64,000 nt of DNA, from positions 165,974,001-166,038,000 of the forward strand of contig NC_042998.1 in assembly GCF_006345805.1 (NCBI RefSeq). The letters are read 5' to 3'. Position 1 is the stretch's first letter. Each line of letters starts with the position of its first letter. A model generated the notes under the pieces. The model saw only the letters and a program-made list of their open reading frames with translations, was not told where the DNA came from and ran no database searches. Made by a program: the position numbers and the translations under genes. Positions 31,510-62,700 of the stretch are shown piece by piece. The DNA comes from Octopus sinensis (lineage: Eukaryota).

Positions 31510-32600
31510 TCATCATCATCATTCAGTGTTTTAAACTCAGGTTGGATAGTTTGACTGTGGACTGGCAAGCCAGTAGGCTGCAACAGGTTCCAATCTAAAA
31601 CTGCAACGTTTCTACAGCAGGATGCCCTTCCTAATGCCAACCACTCTGAGAGTGTAGTGGGTGCTTTTTATGTGCCACCGGCATGGGAGCTAGTCAAGTG
31701 GTACTGGCATCAACCACATTCGGATGGTGCTTTTTACATGCCACCAGCACAGGATCCAGTTGGGGGGAGACTGGCATTAACCACGTTCGGGTAGTGCTTT
31801 TTACATGCCACAAGCACAGGGAGCCAGTCAGGCGGCACTCACATCGACCCACGCATGAATGGTGCTTATTACATGCCACCAGCACAAGTGCCAGTTAGGC
31901 AGCACTGGCATTGGCCACATCTACAATTTCCAATTTGATTTCGATCTTGATTTGCATTTGATTTTGATATTTCTCAAGCGCAGCGTATTGCAATGATACA
32001 AGGGTGCTTTTAAATGGGCTGGTTATGTGACACTGGTATAGGCTACGGCTATGATCTCACTTTACTTGCAGGTTCTTCTCAATCACAGCATATTTCCAGA
32101 CGTCTTGGTCTCTTGTCATTGCCTCTGTGAGACCCAACGTTCAAAGGTCGTGCTTCACCACCTCATCCCATGTTTTCCTGGGTCTCCCTCTGCTATGGGT
32201 ACCTTCCACTGTTAGGGTGTGACACTTCTTCACACAGCTCTTCTCATCCATATGCAGAATGTGACCATACCAGTGCAGTCATCTCTCTTGTACACCACAT
32301 CTAATGCTTCTTATGTCCAACATTTCTCCCAGGGCGCTTACTCTCAGGGTGCACACTGACATTACACATCCAGCGGATCATACTAGCTTCATTTCTTTCA
32401 AGCCTATGTATGTCCTCAACAGTCATGGCCCATGTTTCACTGCTGTGTAGCATGGCTGTTTGCACACAAGCATCATAGTCTACTTTTCACTCTGGCAAGA
32501 GGCCCTTTGTTACCAGCAGAGGTAGGAGCTTTCTGAACTCTGCCCGGGCTATTCTTATTCTAGTGGCAATGTTCTCAGAGCATCGACCCCCACTACAGAC
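31510..32600 (-). mobile_element. RTE LINE 3' fragment with (GAT)n tail
   Basis: Reverse complement of the 3' part of 34745-36951 (RIRIARAEFRKLLPLLVTKG...). Confidence 0.85.
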
Positions 32601-33200
32601 TCTCTCTTGAGATTCCATCTGATGTACTGCAGTATGCCTTTGTTGATCTTGAGAAAGTCTCATCTCCCTTCTTTCTTGAGACTGTATTTGACATGCTGCA
32701 GCATGCGTTTGGTGATCTTTAGAAAGTGTCATGTCCCTTCTGTGTTGAGACTCCATCAGACGTGTTGCAGCATGCCTTTGCTGATGTTGAGAAACATAAA
32801 CATATTCACAGACACACACACATTCATGTAAAAAATGTGAGGATATGCACACATACACTCTCACATACAGACATACACATGTAGTAAGAGAGACACATAT
32901 AGACATACATTCACACGTGTAAGTCATCACGTGTATATGTACGTGTAGATGTTTGTGTGTGTTTAGTAGTGTACCTAACATGGAAACACACACACACTGT
33001 CAGAGAGACAGACACTCATAGGCCCCCACACACATACAGTCAGAGACACATACACACTCATATATGTGATGTCATGTTGGTGGTTTGAAATGTGCTTTAC
33101 TATCTCATACGCAAATACACACACAATAATGAAAGAATAAAAGTGAAGCAATATTACACAATAGTTTTCTATAGAGGGAGAAACATAAATAGTGTATTTA
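32600..33200 (-). mobile_element. Second, truncated copy of the STPR-bearing Helitron derivative, abutting an RTE fragment
   Basis: ORF 32487..32993 shows about three of the 23-aa repeats, fused to RTE C-terminal sequence. Confidence 0.6.
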
Positions 33201-42545: not shown

Positions 42546-43410
42546 AAAAGTTTTGCAATATTTTGGTAACTGCTTTATTCGTCAAGTTACAACAAAAACA
42601 GTCTAGCATTCAAAGTAGAGTCCATCATGATGCACCGTCTGAAGCCATTTTTCTGTAAGTTCTTTGATCCTATGCTGATACCAGTTCTTGTCCTTCGAGG
42701 CGAAGAACTTTACTGAAGCATCCACTTCAAATGTCGGAGCACAGGAAGTGAGTCACGGATCGGAACAAGTAATAATCCGAGGGAGATATTTTTCTGCAAT
42801 CCTGACGTGCATAAACTAGTGGTTAAGTAAGAACCAGTGGTTAAGCAAGAACGTGCCACCAAACACGAGCGTTTCGAACACAAGGGATGCTCTGAGTCTG
42901 GTGGAACTATGAGGGGACAAGTCATTATGAGTTCGTTCCGGGCGGTCGAACCATCAATGCCAACCTGTACTCCGAGCAGCTGGAGCGGATGTATGCTCTT
43001 GTGAGGCAAAAATACCCGGTATTGATTAAGAGAAAACGAGCTTTTCTGCAGCAAGACAACGCAAGACCCCATACCGCTCGAAGGACCTGGAATAATCTTC
43101 AGAAACTTGAGGAAATTGAATTGATTCCACACTCGGCACATGGTCCGGAACATATCCTTCGCATTATTGCTTATTCCGACCCAGGGCTCACTTCTGCGTT
43201 TGTGTTGCTTCATAAACTAAGAGGAGGTGGAAGCTCCAGTGAAGGAGTTCTTCACCTCGAAAGTTAAGAACTGGTATCAGTGTGGGATCAAAGAAATAGC
43301 AGAAAGATGAATTCAGACGGGACAACATAATAGCTTCTAATTTGAATGCTGGACTGCTTTCGTTGTAACTTGACGAATAAAGTAAATAAGTTATCTAAAT
43401 ATTGCAATAA
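42546..43410. mobile_element. Two mariner 3' remnants in inverted orientation (- about 42546-42790, + about 42880-43410)
   Basis: Plus strand WWNYEG...FLQQDNARPHTA. Segment 42550-42690 is a diverged reverse complement of 43265-43408. Confidence 0.8.
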
Positions 43411-43587
43411 TTGAAAGGATTGTCAATTGAAAACGGTTGTAGTGAGACTATTCATCATTCACCCGAATGTCGCGGTTCGCTGGAATGTTGCTCCCATGAA
43501 AATTGACTTCAGTGCATTTCAATTTTGTCGCGCGTAAATACTTTTGTCTTCTCGCTATTTGTACGTTCTCCCTACAACATTACTAAT

Positions 43588-43863
43588 TGTGGTGTGGTGA
43601 TGAGGGAGTGTGACAGAGAGGGAGGGAGCGGAAGTGGGTCTTGCAGGTCTCGCAGGGCGCATGCGCCGGCGGAAGCGGAAGCGAGAGACAGAACGCACGT
43701 GCGGCATCGACCAGGGCGGTCAGACTCGAGAACGACGCCAAGACGACAAGACGCTAGCAAGTTGGCTCAAGGCGAATCCGGCTTCATCTCTGCAGGTAAG
43801 ACCAAATTACACTTCTAATTCTTTTCCTTGTTCTGTTACGCTCCTTTCACCACACTTATCACA
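43588..43863 (+). repeat. 5' LTR (276 bp)
   Basis: TGTGGTGTGG...CTTATCACA. By eye identical to the 3' LTR except for one fewer GCGGAA unit. Confidence 0.97.
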
Positions 43864-43875
43864 AGCTATTTCGGC
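43864..43875 (+). promoter_or_regulatory. Atypical primer-binding site AGCTATTTCGGC, complementary to nt 1-12 of tRNA-Phe(GAA)
   Basis: Abuts the 5' LTR. Its reverse complement GCCGAAATAGCT is the 5' end of metazoan cytosolic tRNA-Phe as I recall it for human and Drosophila. Confidence 0.75.
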
Positions 43876-43916
43876 AAAATAATCACTCGGTTTCGTAAAA
43901 ATAAAAAATAAAAATT

Positions 43917-44672
43917 ATGCAGACTGCTATGATTTCACGCGACCCTATAACACCGTTTTGCGGCGACACCGACGTGGTCGCTTGGTTGAGGAGGGTGAAG
44001 TTGGTGGCGAAGCTACACGGCATAGCTGACCTGGCTAGTTTTATGCCGTTGTATTTGGATGGCCCGGCGTTGGCGTTATATCTGGAGATGGAGGAGACGG
44101 ACCAACGCAGCGCGGACAAGGTGGAGATCCGACTTATGGAGGCCTTCGCGGAAGGAATGTTCGAAGCGTACACTCGACTGGGTAGGATGAGGTGGACAGG
44201 ACAGCAGGTGGACGTGTTCGCCGGCGAGCTTAGAAGGTTGGCAAAACTTGCGGGATATGAGGGAGAGTCGCTAGAACGCACGGTCAGGTTAGCGTTCGTG
44301 ACCGGCTTTCCCGACATCATGTCGGTCGAGCTACAGAAGCTCCCGAACGTGCGTTCGATGCCGATGGCCGAGATTATATCGCGGGCACGTGTACTGGTGT
44401 CGTGCAGCAGGTTGACGTCGGTAGCAGCGACAGCAACGTCGAAAAGTGGCCCAGCTAGGAGCAACGGAGAGGGGCTGGGGAAAGAACGCGTGCGATCGTT
44501 TAACGGACAGTGTTTCCGGTGCCAGGGCCCACACATGGTCCGTGACTGCGCGTCGCCCAAGCCCGAGGTGATTTGCTACCGGTGTCGAGAGCCGGGGCAT
44601 GTGGCCAGCGAGTGTCTGCGGGGAAACGGACCGCGGGAGACTACTGCGCCGGTAGTTGTCCCTTTGGATTAG
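43917..44672 (+). CDS. gag: Retrotransposon Gag (251 aa) with two zinc knuckles
   Basis: ORF track. Knuckles CFRCQGPHMVRDC (CX2CX3HX4C) and CYRCREPGHVASEC (CX2CX4HX4C). Confidence 0.93.
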   Translation: MQTAMISRDPITPFCGDTDVVAWLRRVKLVAKLHGIADLASFMPLYLDGPALALYLEMEETDQRSADKVEIRLMEAFAEGMFEAYTRLGRMRWTGQQVDVFAGELRRLAKLAGYEGESLERTVRLAFVTGFPDIMSVELQKLPNVRSMPMAEIISRARVLVSCSRLTSVAATATSKSGPARSNGEGLGKERVRSFNGQCFRCQGPHMVRDCASPKPEVICYRCREPGHVASECLRGNGPRETTAPVVVPLD

Positions 44673-44682
44673 TAGCGGCGCG
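44621..44682 (+). promoter_or_regulatory. -1 ribosomal frameshift signal: G GGA AAC plus downstream pseudoknot
   Basis: The heptamer is phased to gag codons, with a 7-nt spacer. Stem 44635-44644/44652-44662; loop TGCGCC pairs with GGCGCG at 44677-44682. Confidence 0.8.
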
Positions 44683-47533
44683 TTTCTCATCGTTACCTGT
44701 GGTCGACATTCTGGTGAAGGGGAAGATGTCGCGAGCCCTGGTGGACACGGGCTGTACGACGACCCTGATGACCACAGAAGTGGCAGAGACGTGGAGTGGA
44801 GGAAGCAGTGTCAGGGCAGTCGACGGAAGAGAAGTGCACTGCGAAGGGGTTACGGATGCGCAGATTGTGGTGCAGGGACTGCAGCTGACGTTGCGAGCGA
44901 TTGTGGTCGGTCACTTGGTGGACGAGATCGACGTGGTGATGGGGATGGATGCGATCACCCGTCTGGGAGGTGTTACCGTCAACGAGGCTGGCGTAACGTT
45001 TGGGCTAGCAGGGAAGCCGTGTAGGGCGAGACCACGCACCGACGACAACCGTGAGGAAATGGATGCGGCGCACACCATTGAAGACCAGGATTTTCGGGCT
45101 GTCTTTGATGGCGAGAGGTGGACAGTGGAGTGGCACTGGAAGGGAGAGCCCCCGATGTTAAAGAACAAAGTGGGCTGCTATCAGCATACTCTAAAAGGAG
45201 ATGCCAGAAGTGAGTTCGAGGGGGAGGTGGAGCGGTGGATTAAGGAGGGCATACTGATCCCCTGGGAAAAAGAAGAGAGCGGAGTCCTGCCACTGATGGC
45301 GGTGATACAGCCCACAAAGCGTAAGGTCAGGCCAGTGCTCGACTTCCGAGAGCTGAATGACCACGTGTCGTGTCATACAGGCGGCGAGGCCACGGATGTC
45401 TGCGGAGACACCTTGCGAGAGTGGAGGCAGACGGCGGGGGCCTCCACGATTGTCGATTTAAAGTCGGCATACCTTCAGGTTCATGTGGCTGAGAAACTAT
45501 GGAGGTACCAGCTCGTCAGGTATAGGGGCCGGACGTACTGTCTGACCAGGTTGGGATTCGGGCTGAATTCAGCTCCGAAGATTATGGCAACAATTCTCAA
45601 GGCCGTCCTGGGGAAGGTGGACAGAGTAAAAAGGGCCACCAATTCATACATCGACGACATTCTGGTGGATGAAACCGTGATACCAGCAACGGAGGTCATA
45701 GGCCACCTGAAGAGTTTGGGACTGATCGCCAAGCCGCCAGAGGCTATGGAGGGAGGTGCTGCACTGGGCCTCAAGCTATGGAGAGACAAAGCCGGCGCCT
45801 TGGTGTTCCGGCGAGGGAATGAGATCCCTGAACTGGGCGCCAGCATGAGTAGACGGGAGCTGTTCTCTGTGTGTGGGAAGCTGGTGGGACACTACCCGAT
45901 TGCAGGCTGGCTCCGGACAGCATGCAGCTTCATCAAGAGACGAGCCGAAGGAGTGAAGTGGAATGATAAAGTGGGGGAGAGGACGATCGACATGATGCAG
46001 GAAGTCCTGGTCAGAGTAAGAGCAGAGGACCCGGTGAGGGGCAGCTGGTACGTTCCCAAATCAAAGAGCGGGATCGTATGGTGTGACGCCAGTAGCATCG
46101 CAATTGGGGTTGTCTTGGAAGTGGGAGGTGTCACGGTGGAAGATGCAGCCTGGCTCAGGAAGATGGATGACTGCAGTCACATCAACGTGGCGGAGTTGGA
46201 AGCCGTGCTGAAGGGGGTGAACCTAGCCTTGAAGTGGGGGTTGCACACCATAGAAATCAGGACTGATTCAGCCACTGTACTTGGTTGGGCGACGGCAGTC
46301 ATCACCGATGAGCGGAGGGTGCGGACCAAAGGGGCTGCAGAGATGCTGGTAAAGCGTCGATTGGGGATACTGCGTGAACTGACCACTGAGTTCAATCTGA
46401 AGCTGAGCGTGATCTTTGTGCCTTCCGAGAAGAACAGGGCAGACGTCCTGACCAGGGTTAAGCGAGCCTGGTTGCAAGTGCCAGAGGATGCGAAGCAGGA
46501 TGTAGCTGCAGTATGCCATCTGAGCGACTCGGAGTTGCGGAGACTGCACACCATGCATCACATGGGTGTGGACAGGACGTTGTTCCTGGCCAGAAAAGTC
46601 GACTCCGACGTAACAAGACAGAGCGTGCGGAGAGTGGTTAGCAGTTGTGACAGGTGCCAGTCCATCGACCCTGCTTCGGTCGTGCATGAAGCGGGAAGTA
46701 TTCCAGTGGACCAGGACTGGAGACGACTGGCGGTGGACATAACACACTACCGGCAGGGGACATACCTCTCAATGGTTGACTGCGGACCGGGGCGGTTCGC
46801 CATATGGAGGGAGATGAGGTCAGGAACCGCAGAAGAAATTGCGAAAGTGCTGAACGAGATATTCCTGGAACGAGGCCCCGTGGATGAACTGCTTCTGGAC
46901 AACGGCACTGCATTTCGCTCGGAGGCGCTGAGAGAAATGCTTGATGAGTGGAAGGTCAACCGCTTCTTCAGGGCGGCATACCGGCCAAGTGGAAACGGGG
47001 TGGTGGAAAGGCATCATCGTACCATCAAGGCCATGGCAGAGAGGGGTCACATTTCACCAGTCGAGGCCGTGTTTTGGTACAACATGTCGCCCAGATCAGG
47101 ACAGGCCGAGGAGTCGGTCCCACACAGGGCAATATTCAGGTACGAGTGGAGGCATCCGTGTACTACATCAATGCGACCCGGGGCAGAGGAAGAGCACGCC
47201 TTCGTGCAGGTCGGGGAGGAAGTCTGGGTGAAACCCCCGAACGCACGGTGTACATCGCAATGGGGAAAGGGGACAATAACCTCCGTAAATTCAAAGAATA
47301 ACATCTCGGTAGATGGTATGCCACGCCACGTTTTGGACATACGGAGGATTGTCCATGCCCCGGAGGATGGGACAAGCAACAGTGGGCAAGACGATAACAA
47401 CAGACAGGATGGCGAGGTCGGCAGCAACACGCCAGAAACAAGTCCTAGGGTCGCACTGCGACCACAGAGGGAGCGGCACCCTCCTCCCTGGTTGGCTGAC
47501 TACGAAACCAGTTTCAGGTGCGGGAGCGAGTGA
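44621..47533 (+). CDS. pol: Retrotransposon Pol (protease, RT, RNase H, integrase), probably expressed by -1 frameshift from gag
   Basis: ORF 44573..47533 lies in the -1 frame. Motifs: ALVDTG (PR); LDFRELN, DLKSAY, FGLNSAP, YIDD (RT); CDAS, ELEA, TDS, NRAD (RH); H-H-C-C zinc finger plus AVD / LDNG / VVER (IN). Confidence 0.95.
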   Translation, partial: GKRTAGDYCAGSCPFGLVAARFSSLPVVDILVKGKMSRALVDTGCTTTLMTTEVAETWSGGSSVRAVDGREVHCEGVTDAQIVVQGLQLTLRAIVVGHLVDEIDVVMGMDAITRLGGVTVNEAGVTFGLAGKPCRARPRTDDNREEMDAAHTIEDQDFRAVFDGERWTVEWHWKGEPPMLKNKVGCYQHTLKGDARSEFEGEVERWIKEGILIPWEKEESGVLPLMAVIQPTKRKVRPVLDFRELNDHVSCHTGGEATDVCGDTLREWRQTAGASTIVDLKSAYLQVHVAEKLWRYQLVRYRGRTYCLTRLGFGLNSAPKIMATILKAVLGKVDRVKRATNSYIDDILVDETVIPATEVIGHLKSLGLIAKPPEAMEGGAALGLKLWRDKAGALVFRRGNEIPELGASMSRRELFSVCGKLVGHYPIAGWLRTACSFIKRRAEGVKWNDKVGERTIDMMQEVLVRVRAEDPVRGSWYVPKSKSGIVWCDASSIAIGVVLEVGGVTVEDAAWLRKMDDCSHINVAELEAVLKGVNLALKWGLHTIEIRTDSATVLGWATAVITDERRVRTKGAAEMLVKRRLGILRELTTEFNLKLSVIFVPSEKNRADVLTRVKRAWLQVPEDAKQDVAAVCHLSDSELRRLHTMHHMGVDRTLFLARKVDSDVTRQSVRRVVSSCDRCQSIDPASVVHEAGSIPVDQDWRRLAVDITHYRQGTYLSMVDCGPGRFAIWREMRSGTAEEIAKVLNEIFLERGPVDELLLDNGTAFRSEALREMLDEWKVNRFFRAAYRPSGNGVVERHHRTIKAMAERGHISPVEAVFWYNMSPRSGQAEESVPHRAIFRYEWRHPCTTSMRPGAEEEHAFVQVGEEVWVKPPNARCTSQWGKGTITSVNSKNNISVDGMPRHVLDIRRIVHAPEDGTSNSGQDDNNRQDGEVGSNTPETSPRVALRPQRERHPPPWLADYETSFRCGSE

Positions 47534-47560
47534 GGAAGCCGGTTCAGTGATCTATAGATC

Positions 47561-47569
47561 AGGGGGGCG
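47561..47569 (+). promoter_or_regulatory. Polypurine tract AGGGGGG(CG)
   Basis: Immediately 5' of the 3' LTR. Confidence 0.8.
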
Positions 47570-47851
47570 TGTGGTGTGGTGATGAGGGAGTGTGACAGAG
47601 AGGGAGGGAGCGGAAGTGGGTCTTGCAGGTCTCGCAGGGCGCATGCGCCGGCGGAAGCGGAAGCGGAAGCGAGAGACAGAACGCACGTGCGGCATCGACC
47701 AGGGCGGTCAGACTCGAGAACGACGCCAAGACGACAAGACGCTAGCAAGTTGGCTCAAGGCGAATCCGGCTTCATCTCTGCAGGTAAGACCAAATTACAC
47801 TTCTAATTCTTTTCCTTGTTCTGTTACGCTCCTTTCACCACACTTATCACA
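47570..47851 (+). repeat. 3' LTR (282 bp)
   Basis: Direct repeat of the 5' LTR with three GCGGAA units, followed by TSD CTAAT. Confidence 0.97.
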
Positions 47852-47894
47852 CTAATTTTAAATTTTCTTCACTCCATCTATTTAAATTCACCAT

Positions 47895-48287: not shown

Positions 48288-49226
48288 TTTGCGCGCCCGT
48301 TACCTACGTTATTAAACACACACAAACATCTACATAAACTCTAGAAAAAAATCAATTACGTGAAAGGTCTAAGTTATATAGAAAATACACATCTACCGTT
48401 CCATTAACAGTTCATAATTATCGCAGCAGTTGCAAGGTTGCAAAGTATTTACAATTTGCTTATATTTGGTTACTTTACACTGCATACAAAAATATAAACA
48501 AATTATATACATACAACTGCTTACAAAAATAGAGATTAATGTATATTTTTTCGGTGTAAATAATTTTTTGTTTAAGATATAGAAAAAATGCTTCCAAAGG
48601 TAAAAAGTAATCTGTCCAGAAACACATACAAAGCAAGGAAGAGTGCAGAAAATCGAAGGCGAGAGTCTCAAGAGATAAGGGACATGAGACTTTCTCAACA
48701 TCAGCAAATGCATGCTGCAGCAGGTCAAATACAGTCTCAAGAGATAAAGGAGCTGAGACTTTCTCAACATCAACTAAAGCGTGCTGCAACACGTCTGATG
48801 GAGTATGAAGACAGAAGAGACATGAGATTTTCTCAATATCAGCAAAGGCATGCCGCAGCACATCAAATTGAATCTCAAGACAGAAGGGAGATGAGACTTT
48901 CTCAAGATCAGCAAAGGCATGCTGCAGCATTTGATGCTGAATCATTAAAACAACGTTTAGCAAGCCTGATTACACAGAGGTCCAATAGAATAGCTCTCCG
49001 AAACAAACTACGTACAAATTCGTTCTTCACAAAACTTTGAGCTGCTTTCACATATGATCCATCCCATTCTTATAAAAATAATAATTCTGTCCAACTTGGT
49101 GTGCCAAACTCAAATTGTCGTTTATGCAATACACACATACACACACACACACACACAAACACGCACGCACACGCACAAACTACGCGGTTTTAATCCAGAG
49201 CAACGCCGGATATCTCTGCTACTTGG
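47895..49226 (+). mobile_element. Helitron-derived element carrying a short repeat-protein ORF
   Basis: 3' end TCCAGAGCAACGCCGGA...CTAC(T). Homologous in inverted orientation to about 32600-33200. Confidence 0.6.
48588..49040 (+). CDS. 150-aa ORF with four 23-aa tandem repeats (STPR-like DNA-binding repeats)
   Basis: ESQEIRDMRLSQHQQMHAAAGQI / QSQEIKELRLSQHQLKRAATRLM / EYEDRRDMRFSQYQQRHAAAHQI / ESQDRREMRLSQDQQRHAAAFDA. Expression is unknown. Confidence 0.5.
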   Translation: MLPKVKSNLSRNTYKARKSAENRRRESQEIRDMRLSQHQQMHAAAGQIQSQEIKELRLSQHQLKRAATRLMEYEDRRDMRFSQYQQRHAAAHQIESQDRREMRLSQDQQRHAAAFDAESLKQRLASLITQRSNRIALRNKLRTNSFFTKL

Positions 49227-61004: not shown

Positions 61005-62700
61005 ATACATACATACATACATACATACATACATACATACATACATACATACATACATACATACATACATACATGGTGGTTGTATACTCCTTATGCAGAG
61101 TCTGACCACCCCCTGTACCTACACCTTAGAACCATCATGGCATCTAAAGTGGCTTTTTAAACCAGACAATGTTCTGAAAAAGACCCCACATAAATTGCAC
61201 ACCCAATTTGGACCACCAAGTTAAGTTCTGATCTTTGTGAATCTTAAAATGTCTTTTGAGGCCTCCATTGGATTTGCAAACCTTCTGGCATGCATTGCAT
61301 TCAAAGGCGTGCACAGACATATAGGCAGAGTAGTTGGTAGAGGTTCGTTTTCCATGAGTTCGCAAATGAGATTTGAGCCCAGCAAAAGAAAGGTATGGTC
61401 TGTCACAAACTGTGCACACAAAAAGGTCATTGTGATTTACCTTCTCGATTGTAACATTCTTCTTTAAATCTCTTATGAGCGTTGCATGCGTTATCTTGGA
61501 CTCTTCAAACGCTTTCAATCCACTCCACACTTTTGTTCGCCATCCAGCTCGATCAGAAGTAAGGGTTTCTATGTCCTCTGGATCCATTCCAAATGACTTC
61601 ATAGTAGTCCTTACGCCATCCTTAAACCTTTTTTTAGGTTTATACCAATATCGTTTCCCCCTGCATAAAAGAGCTGTTTGGACATGCGTTCGAACAATAT
61701 GGCCACACCATCTCATTTGGTTTCTCAAAATCATCGCTTTAATTGAGGTAATGCCTGTAGATGCAAGGACATCTGTGTTTGGGGTAAAAGAACTCCATTT
61801 AATGTTCAAAATGCGATGAAGCATTTTTGGTGGAATTGTTCTGACAATTTTAAATGCCTTTCGTAACAAGTCAATCTTTCACAAGAATACAACAGGAATG
61901 GCAAGACAAATGATTTGTAAAGAGACAGCTTTGTATTGCTATTTATATGCCACTAGCACCAAATGCGTGACTCGAAGCCACCAAATGCTTTTGCCCTTTA
62001 AATTCGCAGATGTATTTCTGTATCAAGTTTTCCATCATTTTGTACAGAGCTTCCAAGGTAAATAAGCGAATCGACAACGTCAAGTAACTTACCCTTAACA
62101 AAAATTTTAGTGGGATTACAAACAGCACCACACGCAGGTTGATGCATTACAACTGTTTTTTTTCCTTCAAGTTGATGGTCAAGCCAAAATCATCACAAGC
62201 TGATCGTCAAATGCAGATACAAGAGATTGCAGACCTGTTTCAGAATGACTGACAATATTGCAAACGTCAGCATACAAAAATTCCCTAATGAGTGAAGTAA
62301 AAACCTTCGTTTTAAATTTCAGTCTGGTCAGGTTAAAAACATTCCCTGTTGTTCGATATTTTATGTAAATACTCTCCTCAGAGTTTTGAAAAGCATGTGA
62401 CAACACAACAGCAAAGTATATTGCAAAGAGGGTGGGTGCATCAAAGTCTCCTTGCTTTACTCCATTTTCCACGGAAAAAGATTGAGAGAGCCTACCGCCA
62501 AATTTAACTCTAGCCGTCATATCTTGATGCAATGCCCTGATCATGCTTACAAATTTTTCTGGACAACCTATTTTCCTTAGAATTAGCCATAAAGCATTTC
62601 GATTAACAGCATCGAATGCTTTGCTCAAAGCAATGATATTGGACAAGATTCTGTTCAATGCATTTTCTTGCAATTGTCTGATAGTAAAGATACAATCACA
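61005..62700 (-). mobile_element. Degenerate RTE/BovB-like LINE with C-terminal C2H2 fingers and (TATG)n tail
   Basis: SKAFDAVNR, GVKQG..APTLF, FLYAD and MRWCGHIVR motifs. Frameshifted; stop at 61121-61119. Confidence 0.85.

Follow-up and report, generated by a model that had tools for sequence, protein, structure and literature searches.

A putative primer-binding site complementary to the 5' end of tRNA-Phe in an LTR retrotransposon of Octopus sinensis and its relatives

Which primer starts the minus strand of a long terminal repeat (LTR) retrotransposon, if the sequence behind its 5' LTR offers no TGG for pairing with the CCA end of a tRNA? This question is raised by an element in a 64,000-nt stretch of the Octopus sinensis genome (contig NC_042998.1, positions 165,974,001 to 166,038,000, forward strand; the whole stretch is called the window in the following). 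An earlier note on this DNA had described an LTR retrotransposon there, whose first 12 nt after the 5' LTR appeared complementary to nt 1–12 of tRNA-Phe. From the comparative analysis described here, this 12-mer probably pairs with the 5'-terminal 12 nt of the host's cytoplasmic tRNA-Phe(GAA), which would be cut after U12 to give the primer of the minus strand; the cut and the enzyme responsible for it we infer.

The 12-mer AGCTATTTCGGC has a single exact copy within the window. It adjoins the 5' LTR with a spacer of zero, as the alignment of the two LTRs places the LTR end (...ATCACA) at position 43863. No TGG-type site was found 3' of the LTR in this element. The complement of the 12-mer was searched for in the 600 nt upstream, which include the whole 5' LTR, and in a 5.5-kb region around the element; the best match has four mismatches, which is the level of chance. 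With regard to the tRNA, northern probes for Drosophila tRNA-Phe(GAA) read ...CTGAGCTATTTCGGC, hence this tRNA starts with GCCGAAATAGCTCAG (PMC7038984, PMC6542536), and the same 15-mer is printed in papers on human tRNA-Phe. Thus, the 12-mer is the exact complement (12/12) of nt 1–12 of both the human and the Drosophila tRNA-Phe(GAA), and the abutment to the LTR, the missing TGG, the missing self-complement and the match to the metazoan tRNA, all of which the earlier note had put forward, were found as it had described them. For the 12-bp duplex of site and tRNA a free energy of -18.7 kcal/mol is predicted in the window, and -18.7 to -23.5 kcal/mol across the variants of the site described below. 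No RNA structure was found in the region of U5 and the primer-binding site (PBS; z = +1.2), which places the site in unstructured RNA. The case for the significance of the site is its conservation, not the lone match.

To follow this conservation, relatives were collected by their pol gene. The protein collection holds 699 pol homologues. Named sources are the octopod Argonauta hians, the crab Petrolisthes manimaculis and the mantis shrimp Oratosquilla oratoria, while most other homologues are on contigs of roughly 4 kb from sequencing-run and metagenome assemblies. Overall, the lineage is found in cephalopods and crustaceans and in a large number of uncultured eukaryotes sampled from soil and water. 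A metagenome scan with a single protein query gave no matches; with an alignment as query, 75 metagenome loci were recovered. To these came eight loci found through the exact protein (L001, L077–L083, of which L083 covers the Oratosquilla locus L078 once more at a greater length of 22 kb). The conservation was counted in the 35 non-identical loci with enough upstream sequence, which were anchored solely on the N-terminus of gag and hence blind to the motif. Of these 35 relatives, 33 have the motif AGCTATNNNGGC (AGCTAT-NNN-GGC) in the 350 nt upstream of gag, where approximately 0.0013 instances per locus would be expected by chance, and the remaining two differ from it by one or two nucleotides (AGCTATTTCGTC, AGCTATCACGCG). 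As to its position, in all seven copies with two LTRs (window, L001, L077, L078, L079, L081 and L082) no base lies between the 5' LTR and the motif. At its other end the conservation drops to background right after the twelfth base, where nt 1 of the tRNA would pair. In four relatives (L019, L030, L038 and L054) the site runs directly into the gag ATG, which leaves no room for another PBS. Because the conservation stops at the twelfth base and gag can follow at once, the 12-mer is, as judged from these alignments, the entire non-coding element between LTR and gag; by the same comparison, the site is a mark of the whole, widespread lineage. The relatives retain it, and in none of them was a TGG-type site found, as one would expect from the earlier note.

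Two single loci show peculiarities at this place. In the Argonauta copy (L077, 1625–1975) the target-site duplication (TSD) TCAGT shows that the LTR ends with ...CAAG and not with ...CA, and the final G of the LTR lengthens the complementarity to tRNA-Phe to 13 nt. In L037 the site and the gag ATG are separated by an insert of about 75 nt that resembles a degenerate tRNA (~1845–1940), for which ARAGORN makes no call.

While AGCTAT and GGC are constant, the middle triplet is TTC, CGC, CAC, CCC, CCG or CTA. TTC is found in the window, in Argonauta, which holds the nearest pol relative of the window element, and in about 15 metagenome loci; CTA in the two crustacean genomes (L001, L078) as well as in L080, L081 and L082. 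Mapping the site on a maximum-likelihood tree of the pol core shows no fewer than ten changes in the triplet and none in the flanks. Among pairs of elements with less than 60% identity in the pol core, those from the same sample series agree in site class 14 times out of 14, those from different samples in 31%, if CAC and CGC, which both can pair with G-U-G, are merged; without this merging the values are 8 of 14 against 22%. The triplet follows the sample and not the pol phylogeny, which is an indication and no test, as the pairs are non-independent.

This pattern can be compared with the acceptor stems of natural tRNAs. In the register given by the match, the invariant part of the site would pair with G1–C3 and A7–U12 of the tRNA, and the triplet with acceptor-stem positions 4–6. 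We scanned collections of viral and prokaryote genomes for tRNA-Phe genes of the eukaryotic type (GCCNNNATAGCTCAGTTGGGAGAGC...AGACTGAAGATC). Matches came from giant-virus contigs, from Thermoplasmata archaea and from eukaryotic tRNA-gene arrays misbinned into bacterial metagenome-assembled genomes (MAGs), and the acceptor stems of tRNA-Phe(GAA) vary widely among them. Many start with GCC-GAA, others with GCC-GCG (L134, L171), GCC-GTG (L142, L144, L166 and L168, with an anticodon arm of metazoan type) or GCC-TAG (L094). A natural tRNA-Phe partner thus exists for four of the six variants of the site; with 11 of 64 possible triplets seen in tRNA-Phe genes, an overlap of at least four has a hypergeometric P of 0.006. 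For these four, the variable triplet agrees with natural acceptor-stem variants of tRNA-Phe. Furthermore, in tRNA-Phe of the GUG type a U5-G68 wobble gives the tRNA's own 3' strand the sequence UCGCGGC, which equals the CGC variant of the site. This wobble would explain the alternation of CAC and CGC between sister elements and their co-occurrence in one sample.

As a control for specificity, 84 tRNA genes from eukaryotic clusters were compared with the site (24 genes of 19 specificities come from the 4.4 kb of L168 alone). Matches of 12/12 to any variant were found among these 84 only for Phe or Phe-derived genes and always at offset 0; the runner-up is a tRNA-Lys with one mismatch. Conventional sites, that is complements of the 3' ends including CCA of the same 84 tRNAs, were sought from -3 to +40 in 40 contexts of the family, where the best ones have 2–5 mismatches.

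Some observations were made beside these scans. The tRNA-Phe of L094 (2329–2403, minus strand), which starts with GCCTAGATAGCT and is the partner of CTA, belongs to a Thr, Ser, Phe, Ser tRNA cluster on an AT-rich, giant-virus-like contig. Five contigs assigned to bacterial MAGs in GTDB (L134, L136, L147, L152 and L168) carry dense eukaryotic tRNA arrays, evidently host contamination, with up to 24 genes in 4.4 kb or with tandem units of 3.7 kb; the bins are named Gracilimonas, Denitrobaculum and Pseudomonadota. A gene of the nematode type, the start of which we take to be GCCUCGA, is present on the contaminant contig L184 and was not used as evidence. In Oratosquilla oratoria a tRNA-Val(CAC) gene is located about 200 bp upstream of the 5' LTR (L078 1095–1167, identical with L083 8095–8167), a single case.

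Several points weigh against pairing with tRNA-Phe. The CCG variant equals the 5' end of tRNA-Lys3 and no known eukaryotic tRNA-Phe, and for CCC no tRNA-Phe with GGG was found in the scans. For the crustacean variant CTA a tRNA with GCCUAGAUAGCU is required; in Drosophila, the one arthropod that was checked, the sequence is GCCGAAAUAGCU, and the sole tRNA-Phe gene found with UAG is the one on the giant-virus-like contig. By ARAGORN and Rfam there is no tRNA gene in the window and, apart from the tRNA-Val just mentioned, none in 83 element loci, nor did the extension of the Oratosquilla locus to 22 kb yield a further one; the variants of tRNA-Phe and the elements come from different genomes and never from one and the same. 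The non-independence of the pairs that share a sample also belongs here. Finally, we know of no tRNA cleavage after nt 12 from the literature, and the nuclease is a guess by analogy to Tf1, the self-priming element of Schizosaccharomyces pombe, whose mechanism was reportedly described by Levin in 1995 and 1996.

Taking these points into account, we still consider priming by the 5' end of tRNA-Phe probable. The paired stretch would then comprise the 5' strand of the acceptor stem (nt 1–7), U8, A9 and G10–U12 of the D stem, and the 3' CCA end would not be used. To our knowledge no modification within nt 1–12 of eukaryotic tRNA-Phe blocks Watson-Crick pairing, as m2G10 still pairs, and self-priming of Tf1 works with 11 bp. 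In the process that we propose, the zinc knuckles of Gag would act as a chaperone and open the acceptor and D stems, which allows the 12-bp RNA duplex to form. The tRNA would then be cut where this duplex ends, so that U12 is separated from C13. By analogy to Tf1, the most likely candidate for this cut would be the element's own RNase H, an assignment that we make tentatively; a host nuclease which produces a short 5' tRNA fragment may act instead. From the 3'-OH of U12 the minus-strand strong-stop DNA would be primed, the first added base copying the last base of U5, and this would explain the zero spacer. Later, the plus-strand strong-stop DNA would copy the 12-nt RNA and run off at its 5' end, and such a run-off would fix the length of the site at exactly 12. 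On balance we lean towards extending this to the whole lineage of ~4.2-kb elements marked by the domain DUF7047, all of which would prime from the 5'-terminal 12 nt of tRNA-Phe via a cut in the D stem, with a site that evolves together with the tRNA-Phe acceptor stem of each host.

The site might be a true PBS served by a different host RNA with a natural or processed 3' end ...GCCNNNAUAGCU, its likeness to tRNA-Phe being a coincidence or due to shared ancestry. In favour of this one can say that the tRNA-Phe sequences compared come from other genomes than the elements, that the crustacean CTA disagrees with the one arthropod tRNA-Phe checked, and that a partner need not always be Phe, if CCG is tRNA-Lys3. 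Yet four of the six variants are real 5' ends of tRNA-Phe over 12/12 nt, which no other tRNA type among the 84 provides, and a longer RNA leaves unexplained why the conservation ends exactly at the position of tRNA nt 1. Moreover, the invariant AUAGCU includes the conserved U8–U12 of the tRNA, and we know of no abundant RNA that ends in AUAGCU. A different host RNA therefore appears unlikely to us. A conserved cis-element, which functions in packaging, in dimerisation or as a scaffold for the tRNA, while priming occurs elsewhere or by another route such as protein priming, is quite improbable. The priming role of the 12-mer is based on the comparison of sequences, the variant of L001 contains the palindrome TAGGCCTA, and in Ty3 the tRNA can contact the genome outside the extension site, all of which would suit such an element. 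However, the palindrome is not kept across the variants, and in the standard scheme it is the 3' end of the primer that sets the U5 boundary, which the motif abuts in all two-LTR copies. Neither does the position of the gag ATG in several relatives leave space for another PBS, nor is there a TGG-type site from -3 to +40.

With a length of 12 against 11 nt, no TGG and a likely RNase H-dependent cut, the site also resembles that of Tf1, in which the first 11–12 nt of the transcript would fold back on the site and become cut by RNase H. Such self-priming has very little probability here. It was tested and rejected: neither the LTR nor any other part of the locus contains a complement of the site, which applies to the window element and to about 45 relatives alike (best matches with 3–5 mismatches, as by chance), and nothing inside the elements co-varies with the variable triplet. 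There remains the default mode of LTR elements, priming by a tRNA 3' CCA end at a degenerate or displaced site, which would make the 12-mer an accident. This is hardly conceivable for a 12-mer conserved in 33 of 35 relatives, with no TGG after the LTR and with 3'-end sites as poor as those of the 84 tRNAs above. A displaced conventional site for the 3' end of tRNA-Phe, TGGTGCCGAAA, was also looked for; its only match is a chance one with two mismatches inside gag.

How does priming by the 5' end of tRNA-Phe relate to the systems already described? The known exceptions to priming by tRNA 3' ends are copia, Ty5 and Tca2, which use half-tRNAs, the self-priming Tf1, and DIRS. With the Tf1/sushi group the present element would share a short primer (11 or 12 nt) on a site without TGG that abuts the LTR, and a plus strand that can extend over the primer as far as the primer's 5' end. 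Furthermore, in both cases an RNA-RNA duplex has to be cut endonucleolytically at its edge to free the primer, which Tf1 does with its own RNase H; the same is proposed here by analogy. In contrast, the Tf1 primer is the 5' end of its own mRNA, whereas here a self-complement is missing and the partner would be a host tRNA in trans. Tf1 is also a chromovirus of the Ty3/gypsy group, while the Pol studied here has no Pfam match to a gypsy-type RNase H or a chromodomain and is predicted to fold like a retroviral protease-reverse transcriptase (PR-RT). The hemiviruses (Drosophila copia, yeast Ty5, Candida Tca2/pCal) likewise use an internally cut host tRNA, the 5' fragment of which gives the 3'-OH, and lack a TGG. 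However, their genomes pair with the region of the anticodon stem-loop of the initiator tRNA-Met (or of tRNA-Arg) and the primer is ~39 nt long; here it would be nt 1–12 of tRNA-Phe with a cut in the D stem. In addition, they have the Ty1/copia order of protease, integrase, reverse transcriptase and RNase H (PR-IN-RT-RH), unlike the order PR-RT-RH-IN with its C-terminal integrase found here. Half-tRNA priming of the hemivirus type was considered and rejected for these two reasons, the part of the tRNA and the order of domains. With a conventional PBS (8–18 nt that pair with the 3' end of a tRNA, CCA included) the site has in common its place beside U5 and, by prediction, a host tRNA as partner whose sequence it would track, but it would use the opposite end of the tRNA, so that a cut is required.

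Priming from a cleaved tRNA (copia, Ty5) is known, and so is priming from an 11-mer that RNase H cuts off a 5' end (Tf1); for the present element, comparative data support a related process. A recent large survey of metazoan elements tested tRNA 3' ends only (PMC13524379). Site finders restricted to 3' ends would miss 5'-end sites such as this one and report that there is no PBS. Our literature searches, which included motif strings and had older subscription literature and Repbase Reports outside their reach, found no prior site complementary to a tRNA 5' end.

The element itself is intact in structure (Table 1). Its TG...CA ends and 5-bp TSD, gag followed by PR-RT-RNase H-IN, a polypurine tract before the 3' LTR and a conserved 12-mer in the position of a PBS are the features of an LTR retrotransposon, as which the earlier note had described it. 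In the MAFFT alignment every column of the two LTRs is identical except for one 6-nt indel (GCGGAA). It is apparently a recently inserted and functional element, judged by these features. The putative frameshift heptamer is located just before the gag stop codon, and a -1 slip there would read ...PFGLVAARF..., which is the pol open reading frame (ORF). In Pol the protease motif DTG (aa 58–60) is followed by the YIDD of the reverse transcriptase (aa 359–362), a connection that matches Pfam DUF7047 (aa 426–483), the RNase H residues D505, E541, D565 and D624, and an integrase with HHCC and then D722, D776 and E812. Pfam matches are to an aspartic protease, RVT_1, DUF7047, RNase_H/RVT_3 and rve; in an alignment of 34 homologues the DTG, the DD of the reverse transcriptase, the DEDD of RNase H and the HHCC and DDE residues are invariant or nearly so. 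No third ORF (env) is present, and just 36 nt separate the pol stop codon from the 3' LTR. The context of the polypurine tract, TCA(G/A)G(A/G)GGG, is also found upstream of the 3' LTR in L001 and L077. A further element within the LTR, GGTRAG with a pyrimidine-rich stretch behind it, is found 70–150 nt from the LTR end in the window's own subclade (L077, L078, L080 and L081, and probably also L082); other subclades have AATAAA 35–80 nt before the LTR end in its place. GGTRAG could belong to a short intron or be a U1 site that controls polyadenylation.

Table 1. Features of the retrotransposon, in window coordinates
Feature	Position	Strand	Basis or remark
LTR retrotransposon, intact, 4,264 bp	43588–47851	+	two LTRs, TSD, gag and pol
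5' TSD, CTAAT	43583–43587	+	repeated directly 3' of the 3' LTR
5' LTR, 276 nt, TGTGG...ATCACA	43588–43863	+	repeat search and MAFFT alignment with 3' LTR
Putative primer-binding site AGCTATTTCGGC, complement of tRNA-Phe(GAA) nt 1–12 (GCCGAAAUAGCU)	43864–43875	+	conservation and tRNA-Phe sequence; priming role predicted
5'-splice-donor-like CAGGTAAGA inside 5' LTR	43794–43802	+	outside the argument on priming
gag ORF, 251 aa, two CCHC-type knuckles in translation	43917–44672	+	one knuckle matched by Pfam zf-CCHC
Putative -1 frameshift heptamer C CCU UUG	44659–44665	+	matches the pattern X XXY YYZ when read in frame with gag
pol ORF, 986 aa as listed, -1 frame, overlaps gag	44573–47533	+	Pfam, invariant residues, AlphaFold2 model and Foldseek
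Polypurine tract AGGGGGG	47561–47567	+	2 nt upstream of 3' LTR
3' LTR, 282 nt, TGTGG...ATCACA	47570–47851	+	repeat search and MAFFT alignment
3' TSD, CTAAT	47852–47856	+	matches the 5' copy

According to its domains, the lineage does not fall into one of the common groups. Signatures of BEL/Pao (Peptidase_A17, DUF1758, DUF1759, DUF5641) gave no match even at E <= 10, and Pfam domains specific to copia or gypsy were not found. Concerning Ty3/gypsy, there is no match to RT_RNaseH (PF17917/PF17919), and the one to Integrase_H2C2 is weak (E = 0.0025) and below the cutoff. The RNase H matches the cellular and retroviral models PF00075 and PF13456, and the closest sequences in the PDB are retroviral integrases and the murine leukaemia virus reverse transcriptase. 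An AlphaFold2 model of Pol (mean pLDDT, the predicted local distance difference test, of 75) has its best Foldseek matches with the PR-RT of foamy virus and with p66 of the reverse transcriptase of human immunodeficiency virus 1 (HIV-1). These matches span RT, connection and RNase H, and the connection region is where DUF7047 is located. In this model, the likeness to retroviral Pol would lie in the RT-connection-RNase H architecture, the differences being the absence of env, the length of 4.26 kb, the invertebrate hosts and a sequence identity of 11–15%. Membership in the Retroviridae was rejected for lack of an env despite the similar architecture. Pol looks retrovirus-like and the lineage is unclassified, as the modelled and sequence matches to retroviral enzymes do not place it. 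In a literature search DUF7047 was mentioned in no paper, and the lineage seems to be unnamed. In the locus L081, BEL-like and gypsy-like elements are neighbours of the element, and a BLASTP comparison with them does not place the lineage either.

Outside of the retrotransposon, the window has no Rfam match and no clear host gene. Just upstream of it, a remnant of a mariner-like transposase (...QQDNARPHTA...) is located at 42989–43267. At 48639–48914 a tandem array of 69-nt units has long ORFs on both strands, coding for a repeat peptide rich in Q, R and H, and a related ORF is found 16 kb upstream (32487–32993). Further downstream are pairs of near-identical direct repeats (51115–51592/53755–54281, 54390–54496/58121–58227 and 56532–56886/57495–57792), which are probably other transposable elements or segmental repeats and hold look-alikes of the 12-mer with two mismatches (AGTTATTTAGGC). 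A LINE-like (long interspersed nuclear element) ORF on the minus strand (61147–61869) has named relatives only in Octopus vulgaris, with 55–82% identity; together with the nearest pol relative in Argonauta, this agrees with an octopod cephalopod as host.

If priming from the 5' end of tRNA-Phe holds true, it would be a new mode that joins the use of a host tRNA, as in copia, with a 5'-terminal primer of 12 nt that is released where the duplex ends, as in Tf1. To the use of the 3' end, and of a tRNA cut in its anticodon stem as in copia, it would add a third type of tRNA primer, and it would amount to a version in trans of Tf1 self-priming. An RNase H or host nuclease activity that cuts tRNA-Phe after U12 would be predicted. 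For 5' tRNA fragments a new class of targets would arise, and they could silence such elements as 3' tRNA fragments do with conventional sites. Annotation pipelines that rely on 3' ends would label these elements "PBS-less", and an invertebrate lineage with a retrovirus-like architecture of Pol would have been overlooked. In this lineage, the triplet of the site could then become a readout of the evolution of the host tRNA-Phe or of host switches.

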